A stretch of 23,016 bases of DNA, taken from assembly GCA_964035545.1 (NCBI GenBank), contig CAXIUT010000294.1, positions 1 through 23,016 on the forward strand, in the 5' to 3' direction. Shown here piece by piece: positions 1-19,338 of this stretch. The stretch comes from Bugula neritina (Eukaryota > Animalia > Bryozoa). The position numbers and the translations under genes are program-made. The notes below the pieces were generated by a model. The model worked only from the letters and a program-made list of their open reading frames with translations, searched no databases and was not told the origin of the DNA. Within the stretch, counting starts at the first letter, position 1; each line of letters starts with the position of its first letter.

Positions 1-428
1 ATGAGATAATGTTTTCTCATGTGAAAAATTACTCTCCTGATGAAAATATAGAAATAAAAAGTAAAATTGAATTTCTAATTGACTACATAGGAAGTAAAAG
101 AGGCGATTTGGTTAGATTGGCTGAGCTTATGTATAAAGAAGGAATATCAAATCCTTCTGAAATAAAAGATGAACTAGGAATATCTATAAAAGAGGCCAAT
201 GTTCAAAAGGTTGCTATAAAAAGAATACTAAAAAGAAGTGATTTTTTAATTAGTTATATATCTAATAATAGAAAAGAGTTATCCGATACGGCTATTGCAA
301 TATATGAGAAAAAAATTGCAGAGGCTAAAGGTCTATCCGAGGAGCTAGGGGTTGAGATTAATCAAGCTGAAAAGCTTAGGAAAGAAGTTCTCTCTCTTGG
401 CAATGAAATATCTCAAGGTAATTTCTGA
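1..428 (+). CDS. 3' part of the ECF-like sigma factor gene (cut by the window edge; full copy at 13225..13938)
   Basis: ORF 9..428 equals the C-terminal 139 aa of ORF 13213..13938. Confidence 0.75.
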   Translation, partial: EIMFSHVKNYSPDENIEIKSKIEFLIDYIGSKRGDLVRLAELMYKEGISNPSEIKDELGISIKEANVQKVAIKRILKRSDFLISYISNNRKELSDTAIAIYEKKIAEAKGLSEELGVEINQAEKLRKEVLSLGNEISQGNF

Positions 429-1006
429 TGATCAGTTCAATACATGAAAATATACTTAAACTAGATACACTGTATGATGGCGAGTATCCATATGATTTTG
501 AAGATATTATTGATGAAGACTTAGATGAATTAATTCGATCACCTATTGATGATGTGGTTTTTGAACTTACATCTAATGCGATTGATATTGACAGCTTCTT
601 AACAGCTATGGAAATTACAGCAAATCCAAATATAACTCTTTTACATGATGAGCGAAATTCAGTAAAAAAGCCTGTAGATGAACATGATAAAAATGGTGTG
701 GATGAAAAGTTCTTGTTAGCATATGAGCTTATTTCATTGGCGACTGAGGAGCTGATAAAAAAAGAAAATATGTTAATAAGGGAAAGAGAGTTTGAAATAA
801 AATTAGAAAAAGAAATGCAATTAGAAAAAGAAATGATAAGCTTGCTTGCCAACAGAGATACTTCTAGATTAAATTCTAACTCTATTAGTAGGAATGCAAT
901 TAGATATTTTACTCCTTTATTGGGAAATATATTTTTTGTGTTTTCAGCTTTAATTTCTATATGTTCATTTTTCTTGTTTATTTTAGTTTATATTTATTTT
1001 AACTAA
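428..1006 (+). CDS. Hypothetical protein: acidic N-terminus, coiled coil, C-terminal TM helix (candidate anti-sigma factor)
   Basis: 192 aa. TGATG stop/start overlap with the upstream gene. EKE-rich coiled coil and hydrophobic tail IFFVFSALISICSFFLFILVYIYF. Confidence 0.75.
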   Translation: MISSIHENILKLDTLYDGEYPYDFEDIIDEDLDELIRSPIDDVVFELTSNAIDIDSFLTAMEITANPNITLLHDERNSVKKPVDEHDKNGVDEKFLLAYELISLATEELIKKENMLIREREFEIKLEKEMQLEKEMISLLANRDTSRLNSNSISRNAIRYFTPLLGNIFFVFSALISICSFFLFILVYIYFN

Positions 1007-1019
1007 CGAATTTATTTAA

Positions 1020-1054
1020 AAGCCCCTCTCGACCGTCAAATCAAAAAGGGGCTT
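1020..1054. terminator. Hairpin AAGCCCCT...AGGGGCTT (intrinsic terminator or leader hairpin)
   Basis: 8-bp perfect inverted repeat just after the stop at 1006; followed by a short T-run on the - strand. Confidence 0.5.
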
Positions 1055-1086
1055 GTTATTAAGCATCTACCAGAGAGGTATCAGCT

Positions 1087-1326
1087 ATGTCTGATGGTAT
1101 CAAAATTTTCGCGTGGGTTATACACACGTTCAGTCGGGTGAGCGCATGGCGCTATGCATCTTTTCTTGTTGTGTTGGTTTTGGTTGTGTTCTTGTGGCGT
1201 ATGCCAGATTTGTTAGCAGCGACTTGCAAGCCACCTCCTGTAGCCCAAGCTAGCCTTAGAAATTGTGAGCTATGTTATGAGCCATTGTTAAACATGCAGA
1301 GTGTCAGGGCTGTGGCTTTTAGTTGA
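1087..1326 (+). CDS. Small single-TM membrane protein (possible type I toxin)
   Basis: GAGG RBS before ATG; TM segment YASFLVVLVLVVFLW followed by R. Confidence 0.55.
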   Translation: MSDGIKIFAWVIHTFSRVSAWRYASFLVVLVLVVFLWRMPDLLAATCKPPPVAQASLRNCELCYEPLLNMQSVRAVAFS

Positions 1327-1387
1327 GTTACCAACCTTATACTGTCCTATTAGCTATTTTAGAACAAGACGAAGTAGAGTCTGACCT

Positions 1388-1549
1388 ATGAATAAAACAA
1401 AGAACTATAAGCAAGAGCTTTTTGATAATTTGATAATCAATACTGCAAAAGGAATTGGAATGATTTTAGCCGGTATTGGTGGACTATGTGCTGTTATCGT
1501 TTTGTATGGGCTCTTCTACGCCCTTTTTGGAGAATTTAATGGCAAATGA
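1388..1549 (+). CDS. 53-aa single-TM protein (not in the supplied ORF track)
   Basis: Hand translation: MNKTKNYKQELFDNLIINTAKGIGMILAGIGGLCAVIVLYGLFYALFGEFNGK*. Confidence 0.5.
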   Translation: MNKTKNYKQELFDNLIINTAKGIGMILAGIGGLCAVIVLYGLFYALFGEFNGK

Positions 1550-1709
1550 TACTCCCGTTTTGGTCATGACTATCATATTCTTGCTTATGGTAGGTGGTCT
1601 TGTGCTACTTGGAACAGTTGAATATATATATGCAGGTAAACAAACTGTTGTTGAGAGTGCAAAGGATTCTACTAATCTTAATGCGGAAATTAGCGTCATG
1701 AATGACTGA
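1539..1709 (+). CDS. 56-aa single-TM protein
   Basis: GGAGA RBS (1529-1533) 5 nt before ATG 1539, in frame with track ORF 1476..1709. TM segment VLVMTIIFLLMVGGLVLLGTV. Confidence 0.5.
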   Translation: MANDTPVLVMTIIFLLMVGGLVLLGTVEYIYAGKQTVVESAKDSTNLNAEISVMND

Positions 1710-1739
1710 ATTCATGACGCCATGGCGTACCGGTACGCT
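1693..1739. repeat. Chained palindromes
   Basis: GCGTCATGAAT/ATTCATGACGC 11-bp IR (1693-1720), ACGCCATGGCGT (1717-1728), GCGTACCGGTACGC (1725-1738). Confidence 0.8.
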
Positions 1740-1740
1740 A

Positions 1741-1944
1741 TCAATCGGGCGGTTCAACTTCAAATGCAGCCAGCGCGACCTGGCAATCAATCACCAAATC
1801 ACGCGCCTCCGCCCAGGCGGCTAAATCTGCCTGTTCTGGCAAATAAGCCACGGTTTCAAAGTTATCGCCGTTCAATGGAAAGAGTGTTAATGATTCGGGG
1901 GCAGTTGCTGCACCCGCTGGGTTCTGTATGCTGTTTTCCTGCAT
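1741..1944 (-). CDS. 67-aa acidic hypothetical protein
   Basis: AGAGG RBS upstream on the - strand; protein-like composition; the ORF ends right at the palindrome cluster. Confidence 0.55.
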   Translation of the reverse strand: MQENSIQNPAGAATAPESLTLFPLNGDNFETVAYLPEQADLAAWAEARDLVIDCQVALAAFEVEPPD

Positions 1945-2015
1945 AACTCAATGCCTCTTTGGTCGAGATTGGGTTGTGTGGCCTGTCCCGGTGTTGGTAG
2001 CGCCGGGATAGGTGT
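1939..2015 (+). ncRNA. Candidate cis-antisense RNA (SymR-like layout) covering the start codon and RBS of ORF 1741..1944
   Basis: TTGCTG-N16-TATGCT (1905-1932) lies inside the ORF on the + strand. The 3' hairpin 1982-2012 has loop TTGGTAG and two G-U pairs that form only on the + strand. Confidence 0.45.
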
Positions 2016-2028
2016 TAACTATCAATTA

Positions 2029-2112
2029 TGACGTAATGGCGTTTTGAATGAATGACGCCATTACGTCAAATAGTATAGCGTCATGACGTCACTTTAGCTA
2101 TACCGGTACGCT
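2029..2112. repeat. TGACG/CGTCA-rich inverted-repeat cluster (candidate centromere or operator)
   Basis: 14-bp perfect IR TGACGTAATGGCGT/ACGCCATTACGTCA (2029-2068), CGTCATGACG, TGACGTCA, and TACCGGTACGCT also present at 1728-1739. Confidence 0.7.
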
Positions 2113-2124
2113 GTAGGTACGGTG

Positions 2125-2922
2125 CTAATCAAGCAACAGCGGGTATTGTTCGTCTTGCTTCCAGGTGAATTTAAGCGCCTTGACGGCGCGGCCTTTCTTG
2201 ATGGGTTCCCATTCGATCACGAGGCGGTCTTTTTCGTGTAGCTCTTTGATGGCTTTCTCGATGCAGTTAACGCGAATGTCTTTGTACAGGTAGCTGGCTG
2301 GAATGCCGAGCGCGTGGCGGAAGTCTTCAAGGGTGATGTATAGCTGTTTGGTAGTCTTCCATTGCATGAGGAGTTCGAGCAAGCGCCACGAATAGTAAGA
2401 GCGCAGGGATGAGGCCATTTTCAGTTTGTAGGTGGTGTATTTACCGTTGAGTAGCAAGATATAGGGCGTGGCTTCCTGCGAGAAGTTGATTTCAACCCAG
2501 CCGTCGCCTTTGTGGTATTTGGCGCTGGATACCCAATGCACCTTATGAATTTCTTCGCCGGTAGGGGTGTCCACCACCAGACTAAAATAGCGCGAGAATA
2601 GACGGTCTGTGGCTTTCTTCAGTTCACGGTACGAGCTGTCCAGATCCACGCTAAATTCCCGGGCATATTCCTTGGCCGAGATGCGCAGTGACACCTGATT
2701 ACCTTTCAGTGACTCAGCCTTTGCCATCGCATAGGTGACTAAGCGCTTTTCTACCAGGTTGAGGCCATGCGCGGCGCGAACGAGTGAGTTGCTCATGCTA
2801 ACGGTTAATTCCTGCCCCAGAATTCTGCTGATGTCTTCCGGGACTGTCTGTTTCTCCTGCTGTTCCAGTTTGAGTTTAGCTTCTTCAGCTTTCTTTTCTA
2901 TCCAGCCGATGGGGTCAGACAT
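2125..2922 (-). CDS. repB: Plasmid replication initiator, Rep_3/RepB family
   Basis: Family motifs MSNSLVRAAHGLNLVEKRL, WVSSAKY, LRSYYSWRLLELL, CIEKAIKEL, KKGRAVKALKF; adjacent iterons. Confidence 0.93.
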   Translation of the reverse strand: MSDPIGWIEKKAEEAKLKLEQQEKQTVPEDISRILGQELTVSMSNSLVRAAHGLNLVEKRLVTYAMAKAESLKGNQVSLRISAKEYAREFSVDLDSSYRELKKATDRLFSRYFSLVVDTPTGEEIHKVHWVSSAKYHKGDGWVEINFSQEATPYILLLNGKYTTYKLKMASSLRSYYSWRLLELLMQWKTTKQLYITLEDFRHALGIPASYLYKDIRVNCIEKAIKELHEKDRLVIEWEPIKKGRAVKALKFTWKQDEQYPLLLD

Positions 2923-2934
2923 AGATGAAAAATC

Positions 2935-3000
2935 CTTAATGGGGAATTAAGAATATTTTCCCATTAAGTTAATAGGAAAGCAATTTTGAATTCCTATTAT
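2935..3000. promoter_or_regulatory. Inverted half-iterons upstream of rep (putative autorepression operator)
   Basis: TTAATGGG..TTCCCATTAA and TTAATAGGAA..TTCCTATTA reuse the iteron core TTCC(C/T)ATT in inverted pairs. Confidence 0.6.
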
Positions 3001-3011
3001 TGGCCTTTGCC

Positions 3012-3244
3012 TGTGGACAAGACAGCAAAAACTTCCTATTTAGACAGCAAAAACTTCCCATTAAGCAGCAAAAACTTCCTATTTAGACAGCAAAAACTTC
3101 CTATTTAGGAAATTTATGAACGCTTGAGATGCTTACTGGATAAGGGTTTCAAGCGTTGCGCCACAAGCCCTAAAAAGATCTTTTAAAAGTTTATAAAAGA
3201 TCTTTTAAAAGGAACTGGGGGCAACAGCAAAAACTTCCTATTTA
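3012..3244 (+). repeat. oriV: DnaA-box-like site, four tandem 21-22-bp iterons, AT-rich repeats, fifth iteron
   Basis: TGTGGACAA (reverse complement TTGTCCACA) at 3012-3020. GACAGCAAAAACTTCCTATTTA-type repeats at 3021, 3043, 3065, 3086 and 3223. TAAAAGATCTTTTAAAAG-type repeat twice in 3171-3211. Confidence 0.92.
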
Positions 3245-3374
3245 ACACCAAAGCCTAAAATTCACGCAATTTATTCGGAGTGCATTGCAGACCTGATCAT
3301 TAAAACTTTCAACGTGTAAGTCCACACCGCTATACTGATCTGCGTCATTACTTCATAACGTCACAGTCACCCTT

Positions 3375-3992
3375 ATGAAATCAATCGCATTCCTTAGCCA
3401 GAAAGGCGGCAGCGGTAAAACCACGCTGGCAGTGCATACCGCAGTTACCGCGCAGGAAAGTGGGGAAAGCGTTGTCGTCATTGATACCGACCCGCAACAA
3501 AGTGCAATGACCTGGGCAGAAGCACGCACCACGGATATACCACCGGTAGCCGCCATCAACGCTAACGAAATACAAAAAGTATTCGCAGCTGCTGAAGGCG
3601 AAGCAATGACACTAGCCATAGTCGATACCGCACCACACGCCGCGCCTGAGGCCTCCATTATCGCGGCTAAGGTAGACTTGATTGCTATCCCAGTCAGACC
3701 GTCAGCGTTTGATATAGCCGCAGTAGGCAACGCAGTAGAGATTGCCAAAGCAGCCAACACCAAAACCGTGTTTGTGCTTTCAGCTTGTCCCTTTAGATCA
3801 CCAGAGATAACCGAAACACGCGAGCTGTTAAAAACCTATGGCTTACCTGTAGCACCTACCGACATCACAGAGAGACGCGCATTCTCGCGTGCGGTAGCAT
3901 CAGGTAGGGCAGTAACCGAATTTGAAAGCGATGGTAAAGCAGCTGCTGAAATACGCGCTTTATGGCAATGGCTGAAAGGAGAAATGCAATGA
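3375..3992 (+). CDS. parA: ParA-family (ParF-like, type Ib) partition ATPase
   Basis: Deviant Walker A KGGSGKTT, IDTDPQ, IVDTAP; 205 aa with no N-terminal HTH. Confidence 0.95.
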   Translation: MKSIAFLSQKGGSGKTTLAVHTAVTAQESGESVVVIDTDPQQSAMTWAEARTTDIPPVAAINANEIQKVFAAAEGEAMTLAIVDTAPHAAPEASIIAAKVDLIAIPVRPSAFDIAAVGNAVEIAKAANTKTVFVLSACPFRSPEITETRELLKTYGLPVAPTDITERRAFSRAVASGRAVTEFESDGKAAAEIRALWQWLKGEMQ

Positions 3993-4252
3993 CAAAGAAG
4001 AAAACAGGGCTGGCGCAGTTCACCAAGCAAAGCAGCCAGACCACACAGCAGAGTGAAACACAGGAAAGTAAACCCAGAGAGAAACAGCGCGGTAAGGGTG
4101 ATGTAGTTGCATTAACAGTACGACTGTCACGCGATGACTGGCAACGTGTACACCAGTTGGCGCTATCCGAAGGCGTTAGCATTCAACGGCTGGCAGTAGA
4201 CGGATTATCAAAGCTCTTTGAAGAAAAAGGGCTTAAAAAGCTCAACACCTGA
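3989..4252 (+). CDS. ParG-like ribbon-helix-helix partition protein
   Basis: ATGA overlap with the parA stop; AAGGAG RBS; unstructured N-tail then VALTVRLSRDDWQRVHQLA...IQRLAVDGL RHH pattern. Confidence 0.8.
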   Translation: MTKKKTGLAQFTKQSSQTTQQSETQESKPREKQRGKGDVVALTVRLSRDDWQRVHQLALSEGVSIQRLAVDGLSKLFEEKGLKKLNT

Positions 4253-4377
4253 AATCGTTTTTATCCCAAACATCACACCAATCTGAAAGGTTCCCAAAAG
4301 CGGTTTTCATGCGCAATGGATAGCATACTATTCGGGCAAGCACTGCCCGCGCTGTCAGATCGTGCCAACCGAAAGGT

Positions 4378-4902
4378 TTAGAAAAAGCGAAACCGGTTAT
4401 CTTTCCACTCCTTACCATCAATCAACCCTTCCTCATATAACCCGGCCCAATCGTAAAAGAATGGGTACCAATCGGTGCTGGTGTGCAGTAACTGCATAGC
4501 CACCGCACACACTGCCACAATACCCCATGCAATCGCATACTCTCCAGCCTCACCTGTGCGCAGCCGTCCCCCAAACAGGTGAAAGCGTCGCTCTGAGTTA
4601 GGTGCGAAAGGTACACCGCTGACAGTCATGGAATCGGCGAGTACATGCGTAAGCCCGCCCCAGAAGAACGCGGCCAGGATGCCGTGGAAATCCCACAGCA
4701 ACAGCGCAAACAGTAGGGCGATAAACCAGCCCAACACGTAATGGGTGACGCCCCGGTGTTTTACGTCCTGGCCGGTAGTGGCCTTGATTACCCATTCCAA
4801 CCAATCCGGAGCAGTAGAACCAAGAATTGCGACCGGCACGAGTACCGGGTTAATAACAGCGGTGGTCGCGCCAGCGATGGCGATGTGATTAATCCATTTC
4901 AT
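4378..4902 (-). CDS. YdjM/DUF457-type membrane-bound metal-dependent hydrolase
   Basis: N-terminal His, GSTAPD, HRGVTH and THVLADSMT.SGVP motifs with several TM helices; ATGA overlap with the upstream gene. Confidence 0.88.
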   Translation of the reverse strand: MKWINHIAIAGATTAVINPVLVPVAILGSTAPDWLEWVIKATTGQDVKHRGVTHYVLGWFIALLFALLLWDFHGILAAFFWGGLTHVLADSMTVSGVPFAPNSERRFHLFGGRLRTGEAGEYAIAWGIVAVCAVAMQLLHTSTDWYPFFYDWAGLYEEGLIDGKEWKDNRFRFF

Positions 4903-5828
4903 CGCGGGGTGAGTTCCTTTTGTGGCACTGCTGAAATGTTTTTAAGCCAGGTGTTGATGGTTTTGGCATTGAGCGGGTCGCACAGTCCGGAGAGTTTAAG
5001 GCGGGTTTCGGTGATCTTTGCTTCCTGTTTGGTAAGGTCGCGGCGACTTTGTGCGATCTTTTCGAGGTAGGTCATTTGCTCCTTGGCCTCAGAAATACCT
5101 TGCTGGACGCGTAAGGCGGAGCGAGTCTCCATGCTCCGATAAAGCGCCACTTCCCGTGTGGCGAGGTTGCGGTTTGCGATGGCGGCCACGAAGTCGGCGA
5201 CGATGGTGGCGGTGGTTTGGCGTCGCATGGCTTCGCGTTCTTTTTCGCGGTTAAGTTCTTTGTTGGAGTACAGCGGCATGCTGGCAACGATTGCCACGTA
5301 ATTGCTGCCGAGTTCGGAAGTGCCGGCACCGGCGCTGCTGAGGATATTGGTTTCCTGTCCGTATTTAGCCAGCTGAGCGCGCAGATCCACATTGAGATTC
5401 CACTGACTGCGGGCGGGGTAACAATCGAGGATGTACTGATACACCGCATCGGTGTCGATGTTGGGTGCCTGAACCAGCGCAGGCGGTTTAGCCTTGAAGT
5501 TCAGTTCCTGCCCGCTGAGTGTTGGGATTTTATAAGGCTGCGCCTTTGGTGGTTGCCTGGGTTCCTCTTGTTTCCAAGGCCAAAAGCTAAAAATGCCGTT
5601 TTCTGCTGCCTCAGTGGCCTCAGAATCGGTTATCAGTAATTTTTCATAGTTCTCTATGGGCTTGGCGCTTTCAGCGTCGTACAGCGTCTCTGAGGCGGCG
5701 CTAATCGGCGCGAGAAGCGCGGCGACCAGTACCCAGGGCTTTAAGCCCGCCAATGACCAAAGCCGCTTCCCACCATCCGATGGCAAGGCAGCAAATGAGA
5801 AGAAACCACATGAGGATATGCGTTGCAT
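4899..5828 (-). CDS. Secreted hypothetical protein, C-terminal half resembling one TolC/OEP repeat (start uncertain)
   Basis: GAGG RBS before ATG 5828 (the track starts at TTG 5849). Signal-like KPWVLVAALLAPISAA. Beta-strand VAIVASMPLYS followed by long helices ending ETRLKLSGL. Confidence 0.7.
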   Translation of the reverse strand: MQRISSCGFFSFAALPSDGGKRLWSLAGLKPWVLVAALLAPISAASETLYDAESAKPIENYEKLLITDSEATEAAENGIFSFWPWKQEEPRQPPKAQPYKIPTLSGQELNFKAKPPALVQAPNIDTDAVYQYILDCYPARSQWNLNVDLRAQLAKYGQETNILSSAGAGTSELGSNYVAIVASMPLYSNKELNREKEREAMRRQTTATIVADFVAAIANRNLATREVALYRSMETRSALRVQQGISEAKEQMTYLEKIAQSRRDLTKQEAKITETRLKLSGLCDPLNAKTINTWLKNISAVPQKELTPR

Positions 5829-6429
5829 CGTAGGCAACCTCTGAATCAAGTCTAAAAATCTGGGGATCGCGCCGCAGTAACACCGGGCGCAGATTCGGGG
5901 GTAAGCGTTGTTCTTCTGAGGTCGCTACCACGGTCAGGCGCGTAGCCATCGCGCATTGACGTGCTATTTGTAATTTCCTGCCGGTGAGCTTGTGCGCATC
6001 GTCGATGAACAGCACCGGTTTTTTGGCTTTGCAATAATCAACCAGTGCGTTAGAACGGGCGTATTGTTTGAGTTTTTTCCAGGGTTCACGCTCGTCGAGG
6101 GGAATTTTCTTTTGTTCCTCATCCCACCATTCACTGACGGCGGGATTATCGTGCCATTCACCTACTGGGCTGAGGGTATCGAGGAAGATTGGAGTGGCTT
6201 TGATTTTTGCGCCCCAAATCTCGGTAGCGTTCTCATGCAGGCGAGTCAGCCAGCGCGTTTTTCCGGAGTCGTGTGCGCCGGTGACGAGGATTGGTTTTTT
6301 CTTGGAGATGACCTGCTCACTGGTGACTTTGCCGTACTTTTTAGTTTTGGTGACGAGTAATGGAACGGCAAAGCGCGAACCGTCCGCACGCACCTGATTC
6401 TTAGTGCGCCGTATTTTTAAATACTCCAC
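5701..6429 (-). CDS. P-loop ATPase (AAA-like) with C-terminal membrane anchor
   Basis: GTG start with AAGGA upstream. Walker A GAHDSGKT, Walker B VLFIDDAH. Hydrophobic ILMWFLLICCLAIGWWEAALVIGGL near the C-terminus. Confidence 0.85.
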   Translation of the reverse strand: MEYLKIRRTKNQVRADGSRFAVPLLVTKTKKYGKVTSEQVISKKKPILVTGAHDSGKTRWLTRLHENATEIWGAKIKATPIFLDTLSPVGEWHDNPAVSEWWDEEQKKIPLDEREPWKKLKQYARSNALVDYCKAKKPVLFIDDAHKLTGRKLQIARQCAMATRLTVVATSEEQRLPPNLRPVLLRRDPQIFRLDSEVAYDATHILMWFLLICCLAIGWWEAALVIGGLKALGTGRRASRAD

Positions 6430-6738
6430 GTTGGATTCTAATCCTTTTTGTCGTTTCGTCAGCCCATCGCACTGACCATGTTCCCAGGGTGAATTTTTTT
6501 CCGCTGTTTGCCCTGGGTGAGTCCGGCAAATTGTTGTTTTTACTGGACTCCATTCAAACGGAATTGAGCGAAGCAGAAGGGGGAACTAATTTAAAAGAGT
6601 TTTGCTTAAAAATCAAGCAGCAATTTTGTCGAAAATAAAGGACGGTTTTTTGTAACTTTTTTTCATACTTTAAAAAACAAACGCTTATGAAGTATGATAA
6701 ATTGTGTATTTATTGAACATTAGAGGGATGTTTCACGG

Positions 6739-7344
6739 ATGGGAGTTTATGCCTACCTGCGAGTCAGTACCGATCAGCAAGACGTGGACAACCAGCGCCA
6801 CGGCATACTGGAATATGCGAATACGCACAGCTTGGGAAACCTGCAATTTGTTGAGGATAGCGCCTCAGGGAAGACCAACTGGAAGGAAAGGAAAGCCGGT
6901 GAACTGCTGACTAAAACCATGCAGCCAGGGGACACCATTTTGTTTGCTGAGGTTTCCAGAATGGCACGCTCTGTACTGCAAATTTTAGAGATGTTGGAAC
7001 ACTGCGCAGCGCATGAATTTACCGTGCATATTGTGAAGCAGAAGATGGTGTTTGATGACTCGCTGAACTCTAAAATTACCGCTACGGTTTTGGGTTTGGC
7101 GGCGGAAATTGAGCGAGAATTTATCTCAATGCGCACCAAGGAAGCACTGGCTAAACGTAAGGCTGAGGGCATGGTTTTGGGTCGGCCAAAGGGGAAGGCT
7201 AAGCGGGTGAAATTGGATAAACGCAGTGCGGAGATCCGCAAGTATTTAGAGTTGGGAATCAGTAAGCGAGCTATTTGTAAGCTGGTGGATTGCTCACCTA
7301 GTACGCTTTATGAGTGGATTGAGCGGCGCAAGGTGGAGGTATAA
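6739..7344 (+). CDS. Small serine recombinase (resolvase/invertase) with C-terminal HTH
   Basis: YLRVST catalytic motif, SRMARS, AEIEREFISMRTKEAL, LGRP, HTH GISKRAICKLVDCSPSTLY. Confidence 0.95.
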   Translation: MGVYAYLRVSTDQQDVDNQRHGILEYANTHSLGNLQFVEDSASGKTNWKERKAGELLTKTMQPGDTILFAEVSRMARSVLQILEMLEHCAAHEFTVHIVKQKMVFDDSLNSKITATVLGLAAEIEREFISMRTKEALAKRKAEGMVLGRPKGKAKRVKLDKRSAEIRKYLELGISKRAICKLVDCSPSTLYEWIERRKVEV

Positions 7345-7706
7345 AGTCTTATAAGTGCAGGCTCATCAATTGCTATGGATATTTTTGTATCCATAAGTGT
7401 ATTCAGTTAAGTGGTTTTTCAAGGGTCGACAGGCACTGGTGAACAACGGGCAGTGTACGACTTGATTGACTGCTGGAGCTGCTGGAAGGTTTAACAAGGC
7501 ATACCGGATCGTCAAACCAGTGTACTAAAGGCCTGCCATGCTGGGGAGATTTAAGTCGTGGTACTGTACTAGGCTTTGTTCAGCAAAAGCCTATTGCGGG
7601 CATAATTGCGCGTTTACCGCGTAAAACAACCCACAAGCATTGAATGCAAAGGGGCAGCGAAAACGTCCCTTTATTTTAAATTGATAGGAGGAATGTTGGT
7701 GATTTA

Positions 7707-7729
7707 AACCCGCCGTTGATTGGCGGGTT
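7707..7729 (-). terminator. Intrinsic terminator after the RHH gene
   Basis: AACCCGCC...GGCGGGTT hairpin 5 nt past the stop at 7735. Confidence 0.55.
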
Positions 7730-7734
7730 AGTAT

Positions 7735-7956
7735 TTATAAGAAAATCCGCAGTTCCTTCGTTTCTCCAGATGAATTCCGAAGCATCAAAGAGCCGCCTTT
7801 CTCATACTCTTCAATTAACATGTCATACAGGCGGTAAGCGTTTTTCGTGACTTCTGCGTATGAAGCTGCTTCAGTTTTTTCCTTCAGCGTTTTCAGTCGC
7901 TCTATGGATGGTGGAGGTAACTCCATCTGTACCCGGACTGTATCTTTTTTGGCCAT
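7735..7956 (-). CDS. Ribbon-helix-helix (CopG-like) protein
   Basis: AAGGAG RBS; VRVQMEL strand followed by helices SIERLKTLKEK and SYAEVTKNAYRLY. Confidence 0.75.
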   Translation of the reverse strand: MAKKDTVRVQMELPPPSIERLKTLKEKTEAASYAEVTKNAYRLYDMLIEEYEKGGSLMLRNSSGETKELRIFL

Positions 7957-8188
7957 CTTTACTCCTTAGAATGAGTTCTGTTGAACGTTCATTCTTAACC
8001 TGGATTTCGAGATTGCCTAATCCATAATGGTAAAAGGCAGCTATTGCAAATCCCGTTAACACACAGGAAGCGATTGCAGTGATGGCAATAATTTTCCAAT
8101 GCTTCCAAATCCCAGTTCTTTTTGAATCAGTAATTTCAAATTGAATAACATTAATGTCATTCGGTTTACGCCTAATCTCAAATTTCAT
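7871..8188 (-). CDS. Single-TM hypothetical protein
   Basis: GAGG RBS; TM segment IIAITAIASCVLTGFAIAAFY; overlaps the downstream RHH gene by 86 nt. Confidence 0.55.
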   Translation of the reverse strand: MKFEIRRKPNDINVIQFEITDSKRTGIWKHWKIIAITAIASCVLTGFAIAAFYHYGLGNLEIQVKNERSTELILRSKDGQKRYSPGTDGVTSTIHRATENAEGKN

Positions 8189-8423
8189 GATAACCTCACA
8201 TAAAACCTGAGGATTCCACGCAACTCAAAACCAAATTAGGTAGAAGGTGTATCCTTCTTTTGGTGGTTTTTAAAGTTGTCAGAATGCCTCAGTCTTTTTA
8301 GGACTAAGGACAACTGCCAACTTTGAAAACCAATCAGAGAGTAGAAACCTAAAGCTTCCTTGTTCTTCATCGTTCGTTGTGCCTTATATAAATTTTTTGT
8401 AAAAATGTCATTTAAATCTTGAT

Positions 8424-8462
8424 AAGGCTACTAACTTGGAATTTTTTTAAGTTAGTAGCCTT
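8424..8462. repeat. 14-bp perfect inverted repeat
   Basis: AAGGCTACTAACTT-N11-AAGTTAGTAGCCTT. Confidence 0.8.
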
Positions 8463-8697
8463 ACTGCTTTGTGAGAATACGCATACTCATCCCATGAAAG
8501 AGGGAATAAGGGTGGCTGATGTTAAGAGTCTATTCTCTGATCATAGACATCTAAGTCTCAATACCCCGTTAGCTCCTGCTAACTTCCCTAAAATTTTCCA
8601 AAATGAAACCATATCAATTATACATCAAAAATTGATGTTTTCAAAGTATTGAAAATGAAGTTTTCGCTCTATAAGTCGTTAAGGAATGAATGTCCGA

Positions 8698-8725
8698 AAG
8701 TAGCATAATCCGGATTACGCGCATA
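8698..8725 (-). other. dif-like XerC/XerD site A (11-6-11)
   Basis: - strand reads TATGCGCGTAA-TCCGGA-TTATGCTACTT; each arm matches 8/11 to E. coli dif (GGTGCGCATAA-TGTATA-TTATGTTAAAT). Confidence 0.6.
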
Positions 8726-8983
8726 AGGCTGCAAGCCCCGACGCAGCTTGTTATAGCAGGTTAGGAAGGCTTCTGTTCTGCAAGCTCCACACAAGCCAGC
8801 GTTCATCAACATTCCGTCCCGGCTATCTTCTGGCGCTGCCAAAAGAAAACCGGAACGGAATGAAAAGCGGTGACGCTTGCACGGTTTGGGCTTTAAACCG
8901 GTTCCGCTGCGCTCCACCGGCTAAAAGCCCAAACCGCACCGCGTAACCATAGTGTTTATTAAATATGCCGTTGTAGCATCCTG

Positions 8984-9018
8984 CTGCTGTTCCTGCTGTT
9001 CCTGCTGTTCCTGCTGTT
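8984..9018 (+). repeat. 9-bp tandem repeat (CTGCTGTTC), about 3.9 copies
   Basis: Read directly from the sequence. Confidence 0.9.
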
Positions 9019-9202
9019 TTGGTGCTGGCTCTAATGCTTTTGTTTTTGGGGTTGGCAGGGTATTGCTGTTTGTTAATGGGATACGTCCTGCTTCAGGCGC
9101 TGTGCTTGCTGTACGGTTTTGTTGAGTGTACTTGGCCATTAGGTTGCAGAGCATGGCAGTTGCCGTGCCTGGGAGGCTTTGCCGTAGTGGTGTAGTTAAC
9201 CC

Positions 9203-9296
9203 GCCCTGGCATCCGGCTTGCATTCTTGTCAGGCGTAAACGGATATTTTTATATCCAAAGTGTTTGCCCCTGACAAAGCAAGCCGGATGCCAGGGC
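9203..9296. repeat. 94-nt rod-like hairpin
   Basis: 19-bp perfect stem GCCCTGGCATCCGGCTTGC/GCAAGCCGGATGCCAGGGC, inner TTGTCAGG/CCTGACAA, apex GGATAT-TTTT-ATATCC. Confidence 0.9.
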
Positions 9297-9353
9297 TATG
9301 CTGTGCTGATCTAGTGCGCCGGTGTGCTTGGTACCGCTCTGGAACGCTAAGGA

Positions 9354-9448
9354 ATGGGGAAAAGTTACATAACGCCGTATTATGCGCACGGCCCCGGCGT
9401 TCTGACCCCGTACCATGCGCATAAAGGAATTATGTAAAATTTCCCCAT
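9354..9448. other. Two inverted dif-like sites (B 9362-9390, C 9414-9440) forming a fold-back
   Basis: B (- strand): CGTGCGCATAA-TACGGCG-TTATGTAACTT. C (+ strand): CATGCGCATAA-AGGAA-TTATGTAAAAT. Closed by ATGGGGAAA/TTTCCCCAT. Confidence 0.7.
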
Positions 9449-10502
9449 GCGTGATGCGCACATTGTCCCGGTTCTTGCCTGCTTAATAAGGTTCCGCAAG
9501 CTCCACCCTATACGCGAGCAAGAACAGCGCCAACGGTGCGCCCTAGCCGGATAGTCCGGTATTGCTCCGATCCGCGCCCGCTCTCGCTCTGCCGCCTGCG
9601 CTCGTTCCCTCCGCGTCGGACTAAAGCCGCTGGCTTGTTTCGCCTTGCTTGTCCCGCTAAAAAGCAAGCGGAACAGGCGAAACGCGGCCTAAGTCCGCCG
9701 CTGCGGTAACGGCTCCGGTGGCGTCGCTCGTTTGGTCGCGGCTCTGCGCAATGTCGGCGGGTGATGGTGGTGGCTGTCGGATAGATTGTGTGCGCCTCCC
9801 TTTGTGGTCGCTTCGCGGTCGCTGCGCTTAGCTCTCCCGGCGGTGGCGCTGTGCGCCCTTCGCGGGAAGCGTTGTGGTCGTGGCGGCGGCCTTTAAGTGC
9901 CTGGGTAGGGTGTCGGGCCGGTCGCTCTCTCCGCGTGAAAACAAACCGTAAGCGTTCCGCCCTCGTTACCCCGCGATGAAGCTGCGGCGCGGTTGGAACA
10001 CGGCTTGTTTTCGCGCTGCGGTCGCGGCCTGCCCAGAGCGGCGGGGTGTGGCGGTGGTTGTCGGTGTTTACTCCCTGCGCCGCTTTGGTCTTGTCCTGCG
10101 GGGTTGTCTCCCGGCCCGCGTTGCTGAGCGGGAACCGGTGCGGTACGCGGGGCGTGATTTGGTTGGCGCTGCGCTCGCAAAGATAAAAGCAAAAGCTTGG
10201 TTTACATGAGCGTGTCGGGGCTGTGAGCCGACACGCTCCCGCGCTAATGATTTAGAAACTGAGTGCAGCCGTACAAGTGCCGCCCGCCACTTTTTTGGCG
10301 CAGGAGCTGCGCTAAAAAACCGACGGATCGGCGCTTGACGGGGAAAGAGAGGGAGTGTTTTTTTGCTATAAAAATCAGTGCCTTACATCAGGTTTTTGTG
10401 GATTAAGTTATTGATTTTTAATATAATTTAATATGCTGGATGTCAGAGTGATATATTAATTTCTACTGGCATTTGAACAACGTCATAAGAGATTAATTAA
10501 AG

Positions 10503-11513
10503 ATGGAAAAACAATATACGTCGATTGAGTTGTGCGCTGGTGCGGGTGGTCAGGCTTTGGGGCTGCATCTGGCGGGTTTCCATCATCGGCTGTTGATTGA
10601 GATAGAGGAGCCGGCTTGTAAGACGCTTAACTATAACAATGTGGTGCATTCGTTAGGCTGGGACTCGATTCTTCAGGGGTGTGTCACTGAGTTCGCTAAC
10701 AATGAAGCGGATAGGTATGAAGGCGTTGATTTGGTGGCGGGTGGTGTGCCTTGTCCTCCATTTTCAAAAGCCGGAAAACAGTTAGGCAAAGACGACGAAA
10801 GAGATCTGTTCCCTTCTGCTCTAGAGATCGTTAGAAAAACACAGCCTAAAGCCGTTATGTTGGAGAATGTCTCGGGCCTTCTCGATGCTAAATTTGATGC
10901 TTACCGTGAGGGTATCGAATCGCAGCTTGAAGAAATGGGGTATCAGTCTTTTTGGAAGTTGTTGAATGCATCATCGTTTGGTGTGCCTCAGTTACGCCCA
11001 AGAGTGGTTTTAGTGGCTCTGCGTCCTGAGTATGCAAATTTCTTTGCGTGGCCAGATTATGAGATTACTCCGCCTACTGTTGGTGAAGCGTTGTATGACC
11101 TGATGGCTGAACGTGGTTGGAAGCATGCTGAAGAATGGAAAGCGAAGGCAAACAAGATAGCGCCGACGTTGGTGGGTGGTTCAAAAAAGCACGGCGGGCC
11201 TGATCTTGGGCCAACCAGAGCCAGGCGCGCATGGCAGGAACTACACGTTAATGGGAACCTTATTGGTAATGAGCCACCTGAGGCTGATTTTACTGGCTAT
11301 AAAAATAAAGAAGGCTACGAGTATATGCCGCTGTTGACTGTGAGAATGGCGGCTAGGATTCAGGGCTTTCCTGATTGGTGGACATTCCACGGCAAGAAAA
11401 CGCCGGCTTACCGACAAATAGGAAATGCTTTTCCGCCGCCGGTTGCCGAGGCGGTGGGTAAACAGATTATTCATGCGCTGGCGGCAGCAGATAGCTTGAA
11501 GCAGGCGGCTTAA
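10503..11513 (+). CDS. DNA (cytosine-5) methyltransferase, M.NgoMIV/M.NaeI-like (predicted target GCCGGC)
   Basis: Motif I ELCAGAGG, IV GVPCPPFS, VI ENV, VIII QLRPRV, IX ARIQGFPD, X RQIGNAFPP. TRD IAPTLVGGSKKHGGPDLGPTR as recalled for NgoMIV/NaeI methylases. Confidence 0.95.
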   Translation: MEKQYTSIELCAGAGGQALGLHLAGFHHRLLIEIEEPACKTLNYNNVVHSLGWDSILQGCVTEFANNEADRYEGVDLVAGGVPCPPFSKAGKQLGKDDERDLFPSALEIVRKTQPKAVMLENVSGLLDAKFDAYREGIESQLEEMGYQSFWKLLNASSFGVPQLRPRVVLVALRPEYANFFAWPDYEITPPTVGEALYDLMAERGWKHAEEWKAKANKIAPTLVGGSKKHGGPDLGPTRARRAWQELHVNGNLIGNEPPEADFTGYKNKEGYEYMPLLTVRMAARIQGFPDWWTFHGKKTPAYRQIGNAFPPPVAEAVGKQIIHALAAADSLKQAA

Positions 11514-12187
11514 CTGTCTTCCTGATCGTCGAGGTAGTAGTTAGCCGCGTCTTCCATCACCTTATCGCGGCTTTCCCCTGATTGGCTACTATAGGCATCA
11601 ACGCGGCGTAGTGTTTTTTCTCCAATAGATACCATGGTGGGTATTCCACACTTTTCAGGAAACGCCCAGGAACAAGTGTTGCAGTCTAATGCGCAACCTT
11701 CACAAGCACGACGTTTGCCCACGTTGCAGTTATTGCACATGGGTTGCCAGTTCGCTATTTCATTCCCGCCGCCACGTGACAAGGGTACTTTGTGGTCTGC
11801 TTGTAGGCCTCTGACGCCTGGTGCAACTTGTTTACCGCAGGTGCTGCACACGAACCCGGCGGCTTCAAACAGTTTGCTTTTCTGTGACTGGGTTAAGTAA
11901 TTCCGATCCTGCACAGCGTTGAGGTTGGGTGAGCTGATGCGCCAAGCGTGGCCGGCGAAATCTTCGATATACATGCTTTCCAGGTCGCAACCCATTTGAT
12001 CGCGCAGTTCTCTGGCGCGGCGGTCAAAGTATTTTTGATCGGTGAGGGCTAGTAGTTCAGCTGAGGAAACCCAGGGCTTTGGAAAGGCGTCTCTTTCCTT
12101 GCCCCATAGCCGCCTCAGTATTTTTTCTTTTACTGTGCTGAGCTTGCGTTTGTTGGGAAGTTTTTTGAGATAATTGTCTATGTTCAT
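11510..12187 (-). CDS. HNH endonuclease with N-terminal winged helix (putative cognate restriction enzyme)
   Basis: CSTCG...ADHKVP...GGGN...NWQPMCNNCNVGK, extra CxxC pairs, and RRARELR wHTH-like segment. ATG 12187 preferred over the TTG at 12292. Convergent 4-nt overlap with the MTase. Confidence 0.85.
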   Translation of the reverse strand: MNIDNYLKKLPNKRKLSTVKEKILRRLWGKERDAFPKPWVSSAELLALTDQKYFDRRARELRDQMGCDLESMYIEDFAGHAWRISSPNLNAVQDRNYLTQSQKSKLFEAAGFVCSTCGKQVAPGVRGLQADHKVPLSRGGGNEIANWQPMCNNCNVGKRRACEGCALDCNTCSWAFPEKCGIPTMVSIGEKTLRRVDAYSSQSGESRDKVMEDAANYYLDDQEDS

Positions 12188-12274
12188 AAGTTGCGTTTTC
12201 AATAGCGAGTGAGGGGAGTATGAGCTGAATATGGCAACAGGTATAGAGGCTTTGTTTCTTTTGCAAGCCACTAA

Positions 12275-12290
12275 GGATATAATAATATCC
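12275..12290. promoter_or_regulatory. Palindromic operator-like site GGATA-N6-TATCC (other copies at 7377, 9241, 12369, 12601)
   Basis: GGATATAATAATATCC lies between the divergent HNH and RHH genes and overlaps a TATAAT hexamer. Confidence 0.65.
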
Positions 12291-12309
12291 AAAACATGGG
12301 AGTTATATT

Positions 12310-12606
12310 ATGAGTGTCCAAAAGCGTTATCACATTCACTTTAGAGGGCGTCGGACTACAATCACAGTGGATAATATTGTATCCGAATTGCTAGCGGTTA
12401 AGCTGGGGGTGTTGCCGGATGCACCGGAGGCTCACGCATTGGTCAGGGATTGGCTGGAAAAAACGCTGCATGACAAGCTGGGTGAGAATGTACCGGGTGG
12501 GAACCGAATTAGTCAGTATGCACGAGTGTATGCGATTGAAGCACTGGCGGCTAAAAAACTGATAAGCCAGGTGTGGGAGTGGCGCTTGGCTAAGGAAGAT
12601 GGATAA
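12310..12606 (+). CDS. Small RHH-like DNA-binding protein (candidate regulator)
   Basis: GGGAG RBS; KRYHIHFRGRRTTITVDNIVSELL beta-rich N-terminus followed by helices; divergent from the HNH gene. Confidence 0.7.
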   Translation: MSVQKRYHIHFRGRRTTITVDNIVSELLAVKLGVLPDAPEAHALVRDWLEKTLHDKLGENVPGGNRISQYARVYAIEALAAKKLISQVWEWRLAKEDG

Positions 12607-12879: not shown

Positions 12880-12920
12880 CTTATTTCGATTTAGAGAAGC
12901 TTTATGGGGATAGTTTCCTC

Positions 12921-12949
12921 AAAAGCGTTTGTTTTTTAACGCTTTTTTT
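12921..12949 (+). terminator. Intrinsic terminator-like hairpin
   Basis: AAAAGCGTT...AACGCTTTT running into a T7 tract. Confidence 0.45.
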
Positions 12950-13224
12950 GTGGGCTAGCTCATAAGTTTCCAAAAAATGGTTACTTCTCACTATGTACAT
13001 GCTATTCAAAACCAGAAAATCATCACAGCTAGAAAATTTTCTTCAAGCTGTCTTCTCATTGTGTGCCCCTTCTTTTTTTTCTCGAACTTTTCTAGCAAGT
13101 GTTTTCAGCGAGCTTGTGCTGAGCAGCTACGTATCATGTGAGAAATTTTTTAAGGCGAACGGCGAAAATATGAAGTTTAAGTACTTAGTTAGTTCAAATC
13201 TTTTTAACACGGTTGGTCAATGTC

Positions 13225-13938
13225 ATGAATAAAGTTGAATCTTACTTGAACAAAGATGTTTATCTTAAAGCATTGGCATATGCTCATAGAAAATTAAATA
13301 AATTTAAAGATAGTAATTTATCTATCAACTTTCTTAATGCTGAAGACTTAGTGCATACTGCCGTTGTAAAGACATTAAGCGGAGAGAGAGAGTGGAATAT
13401 AGAAAAAACACCTGATTTATTTGTTCATTTAGCTGGATGCATTAAAAGTAATATCAGTAACTCGTATAGATCCTATGAAGCAAATAAAGTAGATAGAAGA
13501 GATGACTTAGATGAGATAATGTTTTCTCATGTGAAAAATTACTCTCCTGATGAAAATATAGAAATAAAAAGTAAAATTGAATTTCTAATTGACTACATAG
13601 GAAGTAAAAGAGGCGATTTGGTTAGATTGGCTGAGCTTATGTATAAAGAAGGAATATCAAATCCTTCTGAAATAAAAGATGAACTAGGAATATCTATAAA
13701 AGAGGCCAATGTTCAAAAGGTTGCTATAAAAAGAATACTAAAAAGAAGTGATTTTTTAATTAGTTATATATCTAATAATAGAAAAGAGTTATCCGATACG
13801 GCTATTGCAATATATGAGAAAAAAATTGCAGAGGCTAAAGGTCTATCCGAGGAGCTAGGGGTTGAGATTAATCAAGCTGAAAAGCTTAGGAAAGAAGTTC
13901 TCTCTCTTGGCAATGAAATATCTCAAGGTAATTTCTGA
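13225..13938 (+). CDS. ECF-like sigma-70 family factor with C-terminal extension
   Basis: Region-2-like AEDLVHTAVVK...W...LFVHLAGCIKSNISNSYR. HTH-like EGISNPSEIKDELGISIKEA and a second AKGLSEELGVEINQA. Strongly AT-rich. ATG 13225 preferred over TTG 13213. Confidence 0.7.
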   Translation: MNKVESYLNKDVYLKALAYAHRKLNKFKDSNLSINFLNAEDLVHTAVVKTLSGEREWNIEKTPDLFVHLAGCIKSNISNSYRSYEANKVDRRDDLDEIMFSHVKNYSPDENIEIKSKIEFLIDYIGSKRGDLVRLAELMYKEGISNPSEIKDELGISIKEANVQKVAIKRILKRSDFLISYISNNRKELSDTAIAIYEKKIAEAKGLSEELGVEINQAEKLRKEVLSLGNEISQGNF

Positions 13939-18412: not shown

Positions 18413-19338
18413 CGCGGGGTGAGTTCCTTTTGTGGCACTGCTGAAATGTTTTTAAGCCAGGTGTTGATGGTTTTGGCATTGAGCGGGTCGCACAGTCCGG
18501 AGAGTTTAAGGCGGGTTTCGGTGATCTTTGCTTCCTGTTTGGTAAGGTCGCGGCGACTTTGTGCGATCTTTTCGAGGTAGGTCATTTGCTCCTTGGCCTC
18601 AGAAATACCTTGCTGGACGCGTAAGGCGGAGCGAGTCTCCATGCTCCGATAAAGCGCCACTTCCCGTGTGGCGAGGTTGCGGTTTGCGATGGCGGCCACG
18701 AAGTCGGCGACGATGGTGGCGGTGGTTTGGCGTCGCATGGCTTCGCGTTCTTTTTCGCGGTTAAGTTCTTTGTTGGAGTACAGCGGCATGCTGGCAACGA
18801 TTGCCACGTAATTGCTGCCGAGTTCGGAAGTGCCGGCACCGGCGCTGCTGAGGATATTGGTTTCCTGTCCGTATTTAGCCAGCTGAGCGCGCAGATCCAC
18901 ATTGAGATTCCACTGACTGCGGGCGGGGTAACAATCGAGGATGTACTGATACACCGCATCGGTGTCGATGTTGGGTGCCTGAACCAGCGCAGGCGGTTTA
19001 GCCTTGAAGTTCAGTTCCTGCCCGCTGAGTGTTGGGATTTTATAAGGCTGCGCCTTTGGTGGTTGCCTGGGTTCCTCTTGTTTCCAAGGCCAAAAGCTAA
19101 AAATGCCGTTTTCTGCTGCCTCAGTGGCCTCAGAATCGGTTATCAGTAATTTTTCATAGTTCTCTATGGGCTTGGCGCTTTCAGCGTCGTACAGCGTCTC
19201 TGAGGCGGCGCTAATCGGCGCGAGAAGCGCGGCGACCAGTACCCAGGGCTTTAAGCCCGCCAATGACCAAAGCCGCTTCCCACCATCCGATGGCAAGGCA
19301 GCAAATGAGAAGAAACCACATGAGGATATGCGTTGCAT
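18409..19338 (-). CDS. Secreted TolC-repeat-like hypothetical protein (copy 2)
   Basis: Same as 4899..5828. Confidence 0.7.
   Translation of the reverse strand: MQRISSCGFFSFAALPSDGGKRLWSLAGLKPWVLVAALLAPISAASETLYDAESAKPIENYEKLLITDSEATEAAENGIFSFWPWKQEEPRQPPKAQPYKIPTLSGQELNFKAKPPALVQAPNIDTDAVYQYILDCYPARSQWNLNVDLRAQLAKYGQETNILSSAGAGTSELGSNYVAIVASMPLYSNKELNREKEREAMRRQTTATIVADFVAAIANRNLATREVALYRSMETRSALRVQQGISEAKEQMTYLEKIAQSRRDLTKQEAKITETRLKLSGLCDPLNAKTINTWLKNISAVPQKELTPR

Follow-up and report, generated by a model that had tools for sequence, protein, structure and literature searches.

An inverted pair of dif-like sites with maintained fold-back pairing on Rep_3 theta plasmids of Thiothrix and its relatives

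Described Xer substrates and the paired site of the window

Folded single strands that serve as substrates of tyrosine recombinases are, to our knowledge, confined to few systems (integron attC and CTXphi attP) and, for the Xer recombinases, to filamentous phages only. Here we analyze a locus of similar appearance at positions 9354–9448 of a 23,016-nucleotide stretch of DNA (contig CAXIUT010000294.1 of a Bugula neritina assembly; the whole stretch is called the window), where two inverted dif-like sites lie on a theta-replicating plasmid. The closest comparison is the attP region of CTXphi, in which two inverted dif-like sites, 90 bp apart, have centers of 12 bp (attP1) and 5–7 bp (attP2); neither can be used as a duplex and the two pair within one strand (review on CTXphi).

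Chromosomal dif has a spacer that is always 6 nt long and constant within a species, reading T(G/A)TA(T/A/G)A in the tabulated gamma-proteobacteria and TGTATA in Methylococcus (Carnoy and Roten). At the plasmid sites cer and psi, host XerCD act on the core site together with about 180 bp of accessory sequence on the XerC side, where PepA/ArgR/ArcA bind. In Acinetobacter, the pdif sites of Rep_3 plasmids have 6-bp spacers and flank gene-bearing modules, in alternating C/D and D/C arrays with a C-module backbone.

The sequence-only reading of the window had placed two inverted dif-like sites with cores of 7 and 5 nt at 9354–9448, and all of its elements were recovered at these positions:

9354–9362: left clamp ATGGGGAAA, which pairs with 9440–9448 and lies beyond the 11-bp XerD arm
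9362–9390, minus strand: proximal dif-like site (site B), with XerD arm 9362–9372, spacer 9373–9379 and XerC arm 9380–9390
9391–9413: apical loop between the XerC arms, 23 nt, G+C-rich and weakly self-complementary
9414–9440, plus strand: distal dif-like site (site C), with XerC arm 9414–9424, spacer 9425–9429 and XerD arm 9430–9440
9440–9448: right clamp TTTCCCCAT
8698–8725, minus strand: possible third dif-like site, weaker, with arms TATGCGCGTAA and TTATGCTACTT around the 6-nt spacer TCCGGA

The two sites are inverted, with the XerC arms facing inward and the XerD arms outward. Read on the minus strand, the proximal site consists of XerC arm CGTGCGCATAA, the 7-nt spacer TACGGCG and XerD arm TTATGTAACTT; the distal site, on the plus strand, joins XerC arm CATGCGCATAA to XerD arm TTATGTAAAAT through the 5-nt spacer AGGAA. 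The arm matches to E. coli dif previously counted were reproduced, at 10/11 (XerC) and 8/11 (XerD) positions for the proximal site and 9/11 and 10/11 for the distal one, so that the arms of each site agree with dif at 18–19 of 22 positions (scores of 16.0 and 18.6, respectively, against a matrix derived from the plasmid family described below). The inner arms TTATGCGCA/TGCGCATAA are complementary to each other, as are the outer arms TTACATAA/TTATGTAA, and the 9-bp clamp (ATGGGGAAA/TTTCCCCAT) extends the palindrome past the XerD arms and closes the stem. Folding of the single strands confirmed the proposed pairing, with its bulged core, 23-nt loop and clamp. With the spacers forming an internal loop, the plus strand reached −25.7 kcal/mol (z −4.7) and the minus strand −31.4 kcal/mol (z −6.4); none of 200 shuffles folded as well as the element itself.

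The window is a 13,510-bp circle covered 1.7 times (period 13,510, 0 mismatches), and through this circular reading the element recurs at 22864–22958. Features beyond position 13,510 are likewise a repeat reading of the circle and not duplications. No further dif-like site of comparable quality exists in the 13.5-kb unit. The weaker site at 8698–8725 (score 13.3, 7/8 of the XerC core) lies ~640 bp upstream of the pair in the same orientation as the proximal site, and it has no conserved counterpart in relatives. A scan for terminators and promoters at the pair detected no T-tract or terminator signature, and a known RNA was rejected because an Rfam search of the unit returned sub-threshold chance matches only.

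The pair resembles cer and psi in having a XerC-spacer-XerD core on a plasmid with a spacer inside their 6–8-bp range (7 nt in the proximal site, 6 nt in relatives). Unlike those sites, it has no accessory region: the XerC side is occupied by the 23-nt loop and the inverted partner site. A folded form would also recall integron attC (see also PMC4792948), a single-strand tyrosine-recombinase substrate in which the unpaired or extrahelical bases of an imperfect palindrome define the reactive strand and whose structure is conserved although its sequence varies. However, attC sites are recombined by IntI and not XerCD, carry other motifs and flank cassettes in arrays, whereas the element of the window is solitary.

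Conservation of the pair and of its pairing

Relatives were collected by using as an anchor the serine recombinase gene linked to the pair, four plasmid copies of which are 71–72% identical. We took the best 80 loci from a contig collection with one genome per species (185,579 species genomes), took another best 80 from metagenomes, and added five further complete Thiothrix plasmids; loci are cited below by L numbers. One detector looked for dif-like arms and a second for outer XerD-type arms and mutually complementary inner arms only. Together, they located the same architecture in about 20 related plasmids and contigs. The earlier reading had staked its fold-back site on arms conserved in homologous regions, and conservation held across these loci. 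The pair is present on seven complete circular plasmids, from Thiothrix lacustris, T. winogradskyi, T. fructosivorans, T. unzii and T. subterranea, and also in uncultured Thiotrichaceae, one Methylococcales metagenome-assembled genome (MAG), another proteobacterial MAG and several metagenome contigs. The family-derived matrix recognized 39 sites in 18 family loci versus ~1 in shuffles. All but three of these sites, which are weak singles, belong to inverted pairs, and the shuffles contained no pairs; shuffled controls of about 1 Mb of related DNA yielded no inverted dif-like pair either.

The position of the pair is also conserved. Each replicon carries one pair in constant orientation, 0.6–2 kb downstream of the serine recombinase gene and at the junction of the conserved backbone and variable cargo (restriction-modification, metal efflux, toxin-antitoxin); the exception is the metagenome contig L096, with two Rep_3 genes and two pairs. 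Conservation across 32 family half-sites is higher in the XerD arm than in the XerC arm; dif positions 23/24 of the XerD arm vary, and 30 of the 32 half-sites have an A at position 25. Chromosomal dif shows the same position-wise variability (Carnoy and Roten), and it is chiefly on account of this dif-like profile of the XerD arms that we assign the arms to XerC and XerD and not to another protein.

The spacers, read from the XerC side and given as proximal/distal, are 7/5 in the window, 6/5 in L095 and L096a, 6/7 in L090/L094, L096b and (by our own parse) L005, 6/6 in L084 (identical spacers) and L002/L102/L164 (one mismatch), and 10/6 in the lineages of L001, L003/L107, L105 and L039/L045. 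The 5-nt spacer AAAGA of L095/L096 is an independent recurrence of this length. The 10-nt spacers of L039 and L001 consist of the 6-nt one plus inserted bases, which in the hairpin gives a paired center with a bulge. The window is the only family member without any 6-nt spacer. The loops of the relatives measure 17–42 nt, are unrelated in sequence and are usually self-pairing.

These properties match part of what the sequence-only reading had called a fold-back Xer site like CTXphi attP. The architecture, the unequal spacers and the intrastrand pairing stand, with the conservation of that pairing as a new finding, but a CTX-type integrative element is not supported. As in CTXphi attP, dif-like sites are inverted and have unequal, non-canonical spacers (7/5 here; 10/6, 6/7 and 6/5 in relatives), pairing within a strand rebuilds one putative XerCD-binding duplex with an unpaired or bulged center, and the window plasmid encodes no Xer-type recombinase of its own. 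The carrier, on the other hand, is a Rep_3 theta plasmid and not a filamentous phage with single-stranded DNA (ssDNA) and rolling-circle replication, and the sites are 17–42 nt apart instead of 90. Unlike attP, many relatives retain one site with the canonical 6 bp, and in two lineages the spacers are 6/6 and pair fully.

The clamp sequences differ by lineage (GGGGAAA, GGGGCAAA, CTGGGCAAA, AAGTCCGAA, CAGCCAA, TGCCC) yet stay complementary. When 15 distinct elements were aligned in register, the outer stem of 20 bp (clamp plus XerD arm) was 84.3% paired versus 67.0% in column shuffles, which ignore sequence relatedness (0/500 shuffles as high), and its covariation score was 0.411 versus 0.122 in the same controls (0/500). 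Changes on both sides were present in 13 of the 20 outer-stem pairs (2/500 shuffles), and sliding the partner by 1–3 columns lowered the pairing to 32–45%. The XerC arms are diverse (TGCGCATAA, GCGCCTAA, TCGTATAA, TCGTGAAA, GCGCAGAA, TTAGCATAA and others), and each pairs better with its own partner (82%) than with the partners of other elements (66%; 0/5,000 permutations). Furthermore, the comparisons L003/L107, L001/L003 and L039/L045 each revealed a compensatory double substitution across the two XerC arms, where one-sided changes were absent. The members tested fold at z −6 to −14.6 on both strands, with the exception of L096b (−2.7/−3.8). We also compared G.T with A.C mismatches as a test for a single folding strand and found no clear bias; the strands fold about equally.

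Judged from these substitution patterns, the palindrome is actively maintained and its fold-back is under selection. Clamp columns with several independent Watson-Crick types, together with discrete compensatory events, would be hard to explain unless the arms pair at some stage as a hairpin or cruciform.

Exchange of DNA around the pair was evident in several loci. L096 (positions 1–12603), which carries two Rep_3 genes and two copies of the pair, each accompanied by a KilA-N gene, is a cointegrate of two replicons. The flanks of its two pairs are 88–93% identical, with interiors at random level. When the window was compared with L005 and L096a with L096b, flanks of 84–88% identity enclosed interiors of 36–39%; the reverse applied to L003/L107 and L090/L094, with interiors 96–97% and flanks 46–74% identical. 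The interior, the left flank and the right flank are, in other words, phylogenetically decoupled in both directions, which suggests that the pair may be a hot spot of recombination at which backbone and cargo are reassorted. L098 (7790–7880) retains the element from the proximal site through the loop and the distal XerC arm to a 6-nt spacer, and unrelated DNA follows where the XerD arm should start. This break, exactly at the boundary of spacer and XerD arm, is suggestive of a crossover at that point. The DNA in place of the distal XerD arm holds a 16-bp perfect palindrome, TGCGCCTATAGGCGCA. Sharp boundaries between interior and flanks were dropped as proof of site-specific crossover, since homologous exchange at the conserved XerD arms would give the same boundary.

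A separate scan of viral contigs for a proximal site with an inverted XerC arm returned 27 loci, mostly single dif-type sites at which an inner arm matched by chance. Tailed-phage contigs supply the few pair-like cases, whose XerD arms are weak and which have no backbone in common. For example, L172 (12238–12301) and L169 (2008–2063), with RecT/YqaJ and capsid/adaptor genes, respectively, have pair-like inverted CGCATAA sites and weak XerD-type arms; in L172, spacers of 8 and 6 nt differ by an insertion and the inner stem is 14 bp. The viral-contig matches neither back nor refute a phage link.

Resolution, integration and other possible explanations

The reading we favor, with a probability of about 0.5, is that Rep_3 theta plasmids carry, in this element, a conserved palindromic double site for Xer (XerC/XerD) recombination that serves multimer and cointegrate resolution and in which the fold-back form matters. 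On one strand, as a hairpin on transient ssDNA or as a cruciform, the two sites would pair into a single XerC/XerD-binding duplex whose central region would be a bulge or internal loop, as in CTXphi attP(+). Host XerCD would act from plasmid to plasmid: they would resolve the multimers and cointegrates that one plasmid forms and, from time to time, reassort backbone and cargo. Fold-back could let XerC exchange strands without FtsK or accessory sequences of the cer/psi type, and plasmid-specific spacers and XerC arms would act as a "barcode" that limits recombination to identical copies.

The variability of the spacers is consistent with this proposal. Next to the XerC arm the spacers may begin with A, T, G or C, and they are unrelated even between plasmids of the same strain, and the co-resident plasmids pTfr12/pTfr21 and pThCT3_1/pThCT3_2 have different interiors. 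Diverse spacers would be expected, as for cer, psi and pdif, if the only partner required were another copy of the same plasmid. The different interiors of co-resident plasmids, the two unlike pairs that L096 keeps unresolved and the reassorted interiors and flanks all fit a self-specific Xer locus.

A stricter version of this reading makes the hairpin or cruciform with its bulged Xer site the active form, on which XerC alone would exchange strands with no FtsK, PepA/ArgR-type factors or activator, guided by a self-specific barcode. The top-strand hairpins of two copies would exchange, followed by the bottom-strand hairpins, to give a full crossover, and the barcode of spacer and XerC arm would stop co-resident sister plasmids from recombining. 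We offer this version tentatively.

Several points weigh against a resolution site that depends on folding. Binding or cutting of the folded or duplex form by XerC/XerD, an active role of the folded form and a function in resolving multimers and cointegrates are all what we infer from sequence. The canonical 6-nt site kept by most relatives could act as an ordinary duplex site without folding, and the serine recombinase, with its conserved upstream region, could be a dedicated multimer-resolution system that would make the Xer site partly redundant. Cruciform extrusion from an imperfect palindrome with a center of 17–42 nt is kinetically unfavorable, and no ssDNA stage of these plasmids is known. 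The close relatives L008, L009, L089, L093 and L167 have neither the pair nor a solo site. Interiors and flanks can also be decoupled by homologous recombination in the conserved flanks, the relatedness of the sequences is ignored by the shuffle controls for covariation, and the neighborhood is rich in long palindromes, so a local palindrome-generating process may be their source.

Among the alternatives, the one that survives best describes two ordinary duplex Xer sites: one a working resolution or pdif-type site, the other a relic of an inverted duplication or the second edge of a minimal, empty C module, with a hairpin of no function. It draws on Acinetobacter, where inverted sites of the host Xer type also lie on Rep_3 plasmids with dif modules and show variable XerC arms and spacers, shuffling and cointegrates, and where empty modules are known. 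L084 and L005 even have Acinetobacter-like XerC arms (TCGTATAA/TCGTGAAA). The usual presence of one 6-nt spacer per pair, an interior that acts as an exchangeable cassette and the existence of a cointegrate agree with such duplex sites as well. The likeness ends with the spacers and the layout. Against the 6-bp spacers of pdif, the window has 7 and 5 nt and relatives typically one of 6 plus one of 5, 7 or 10. Instead of arrays around gene-bearing modules, there is a single pair per replicon with 17–42 nt and no gene between its sites, XerC arms inward in an orientation opposite to the Acinetobacter backbone C-module arrangement, and an apparently selected hairpin with a clamp. Two duplex sites would also leave unexplained the clamp outside the Xer arms and its compensatory evolution, the partner-specific co-variation of the XerC arms, the self-pairing loops and the retention of partners with 5-, 7- and 10-nt spacers, which would be poor duplex substrates. 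We consider this explanation unlikely.

Lower still in probability is integration into the chromosome. The sequence-only reading had inferred that the plasmid may resemble a CTX-type mobile element that exploits Xer for integration (IMEX): its ssDNA form would fold into an attP(+)-like hairpin that XerC recombines with chromosomal dif, and the plasmid would integrate. The site does match CTXphi attP feature for feature (inverted dif-like sites, unequal non-canonical spacers, conserved fold-back), and, because the window has no 6-nt spacer, its two duplex sites are both non-canonical. Furthermore, the minus-strand hairpin would present a spacer starting with TAC, and T or TA is common to gamma-proteobacterial dif spacers. 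An ssDNA stage could arise by mobilization in trans or on the lagging strand, and the flanking ~1 kb is non-coding and rich in hairpins.

The relatives, however, are plasmid-borne. No copy integrated at dif, which the earlier reading had proposed to look for, occurs among the best 80 loci of either scan (160 in total), and no chromosomal junction among the ~20 pair-bearing loci. All pair-bearing contigs are of plasmid size (3.5–41 kb) and share the plasmid backbone; closed circles account for seven of them. Even the 41-kb L039 has ParA, YdjM, AAA and recombinase genes upstream of the pair, efflux cargo downstream and no chromosomal flank. Most relatives also keep a canonical 6-nt site, which counts against a CTX-type attP. 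CTX-type integration requires identity to host dif next to the XerC arm (review on CTXphi). The spacers of the family do not appear conserved toward a host dif as those of CTXphi are; next to the XerC arms they are unrelated among plasmids of one genus or even one strain, which would not fit a single conserved dif target, and they look too diverse for one dif when compared with published gamma-proteobacterial dif spacers. As the earlier reading had noted, the plasmid encodes no rolling-circle Rep or relaxase: among the window proteins, Pfam, NCBIfam and PHROGs detected neither of these, nor a tyrosine recombinase or phage genes, and the small open reading frames (ORFs) adjoining the pair include no Xer activator of the XafT/DUF3653 type or other DNA-binding accessory protein. 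Two traits that define a CTX-type IMEX, a replicon with ssDNA and copies integrated in the chromosome, were not seen for this element. Because relatives are found on plasmids only, spacers are diverse, co-resident plasmids differ in their interiors, and no ssDNA-generating function or XafT-like factor is encoded, we do not follow the IMEX inference, and integration of the window plasmid at host dif is disfavored and, in our estimate, improbable.

The least probable explanation is a palindrome unrelated to Xer and only incidentally similar to dif, which might act as an insulator or terminator where backbone meets cargo, give a signal for priming or transfer, or be targeted by a plasmid protein like the linked serine recombinase. 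Tight synteny with that recombinase, the further long palindromes beside the pair in the window and L005 and the unrelated long hairpins downstream of more distant recombinase homologues point that way, but the 18–19/22 match to dif in both sites, with dif-like position variability, is far beyond chance, the pair has no terminator signature or Rfam match, and its half-site geometry is unlike that of serine-recombinase crossover sites, with their hix/res organization. The serine recombinase was rejected as the protein that targets the pair, because its more distant relatives lack dif-armed palindromes and the recombinase of L005, 91% identical, is accompanied by different inner XerC arms.

The carrier plasmid and implications for its family

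The plasmid belongs, by its initiator and gene order, to a family best represented in Thiothrix. The theta replicon of the earlier reading was borne out by a Rep_3 initiator with four to five 22-bp iterons. The features used here are:

2125–2922, minus strand: Rep_3 initiator gene (profile match)
3020–3108 (four copies) and 3224–3252 (one copy): oriV iterons of 22 bp, beside the Rep_3 gene
6739–7344, plus strand: serine recombinase of the resolvase/invertase type, 201 aa (PF00239, 3e-30)

The closest Rep proteins, 50–53% identical, are on Thiothrix plasmids whose gene order matches too, and the window plasmid is a Rep_3/iteron replicon of this Thiothrix-type family of gamma-proteobacteria. In PLSDB, megablast with the complete plasmid sequence turned up no close relative, and a distant blastn search with the 8.9–10.5-kb region showed only a 60-nt block in common with Thiothrix plasmids. 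Exact-protein look-ups returned no record for the window recombinase and methylase and, for the pTfr21 recombinase, only pTfr21 itself. The Xer pair lies ~6.2 kb from Rep_3/oriV, roughly opposite on the circle (about 46%). A position opposite oriV, like that of a terminus-located dif, was rejected as a rule: it fits the window and, as estimated from annotated rep positions, L001, but not L002 or L003.

The unit has 46% G+C overall and is strongly mosaic (28–65%). It encodes ParA and a small ribbon-helix-helix protein, and upstream of the serine recombinase gene there is an A/T-rich block that is conserved among relatives and may be a res site. The backbone also includes a trio on the minus strand (4378–6429), conserved family-wide, that codes for a YdjM-like membrane hydrolase, a 316-aa protein and a 242-aa AAA protein. 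The 316-aa protein had no family match and has a signal-like segment at its N-terminus by eye; the AAA protein has a hydrophobic C-terminus, also by eye. Downstream of the pair (10503–12292), a C5 cytosine methyltransferase gene is convergent with a gene for a 260-aa HNH endonuclease. The two probably form a type II restriction-modification cargo; other restriction-modification systems occupy this position in related plasmids. An A+T-rich island (12900–13510 and 1–1006; 28–33% G+C versus 46% overall) has ORFs of 241 aa (faint sigma-factor-like match) and 192 aa (no family) and looks like recently acquired cargo.

Other palindromes and repeats surround the pair. Only 58 nt upstream, a 94-nt near-perfect palindrome (9203–9296; 19-bp outer stem, −38 kcal/mol, z −9.5) is not dif-like and had no homologue in the other loci. 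In L005, an 80-nt almost perfect hairpin (2772–2862; z −11.9) with the conserved loop GTTCCGCAAGCTCCAC stands directly 3′ of the pair, and its homologous region in the window (9455–9545) has decayed (z −1.0). The window is non-coding from 9.45 to 10.43 kb, with up to 65% G+C, and is 75–82% conserved with L005 in this region. At its end is the 60-nt block (10371–10430), 80–83% conserved in all Thiothrix plasmids examined and usually ~650–930 nt downstream of the pair. It precedes a conserved pair of 95-aa and 136-aa genes in the Thiothrix plasmids and the methylase gene in the window, and may be a promoter or operator that these plasmids share. At 8984–9018, a perfect tandem repeat of 9 nt (CTGCTGTTC × 3.9) lies within a doubtful 100-aa ORF, where it translates as a QEQ repeat. 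On the more distant plasmids L019, L111, L041 and L030, unrelated palindromes of 90–100 nt, not dif-like, follow the same-family recombinase gene at ~0.4–1.4 kb. A gammaproteobacterial MAG contig (L058) has three short palindromic repeats (1834–1881, 7717–7765 and 18901–18948) of the form CTTTACATAA-TTACAAGG...CCTTGTAA-TTATGTAAAG, with XerD-arm-like ends and a dispersed look resembling repetitive extragenic palindromes.

In full-text literature searches, plasmid Xer sites that are paired or folded were not described, Xer sites of Thiothrix plasmids did not come up at all, and the reviews consulted show no comparable palindromic layout. If the folded form is the active one, the element would be the plasmid version of CTXphi attP(+), with no earlier example outside filamentous phages. 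Structured Xer substrates would then be a more general solution, one that reaches ordinary theta plasmids, and would offer a natural alternative to cer and psi for plasmid resolution that is free of accessory factors. The natural variants (6/6, 6/5, 6/7, 7/5 and 10/6 spacers with varied clamps) provide a ready mutant panel for relating XerC/XerD catalysis to spacer asymmetry and folding. Plasmid mosaicism at Xer sites would also extend beyond Acinetobacter, to environmental gamma-proteobacteria that oxidize sulfur or live as methanotrophs.

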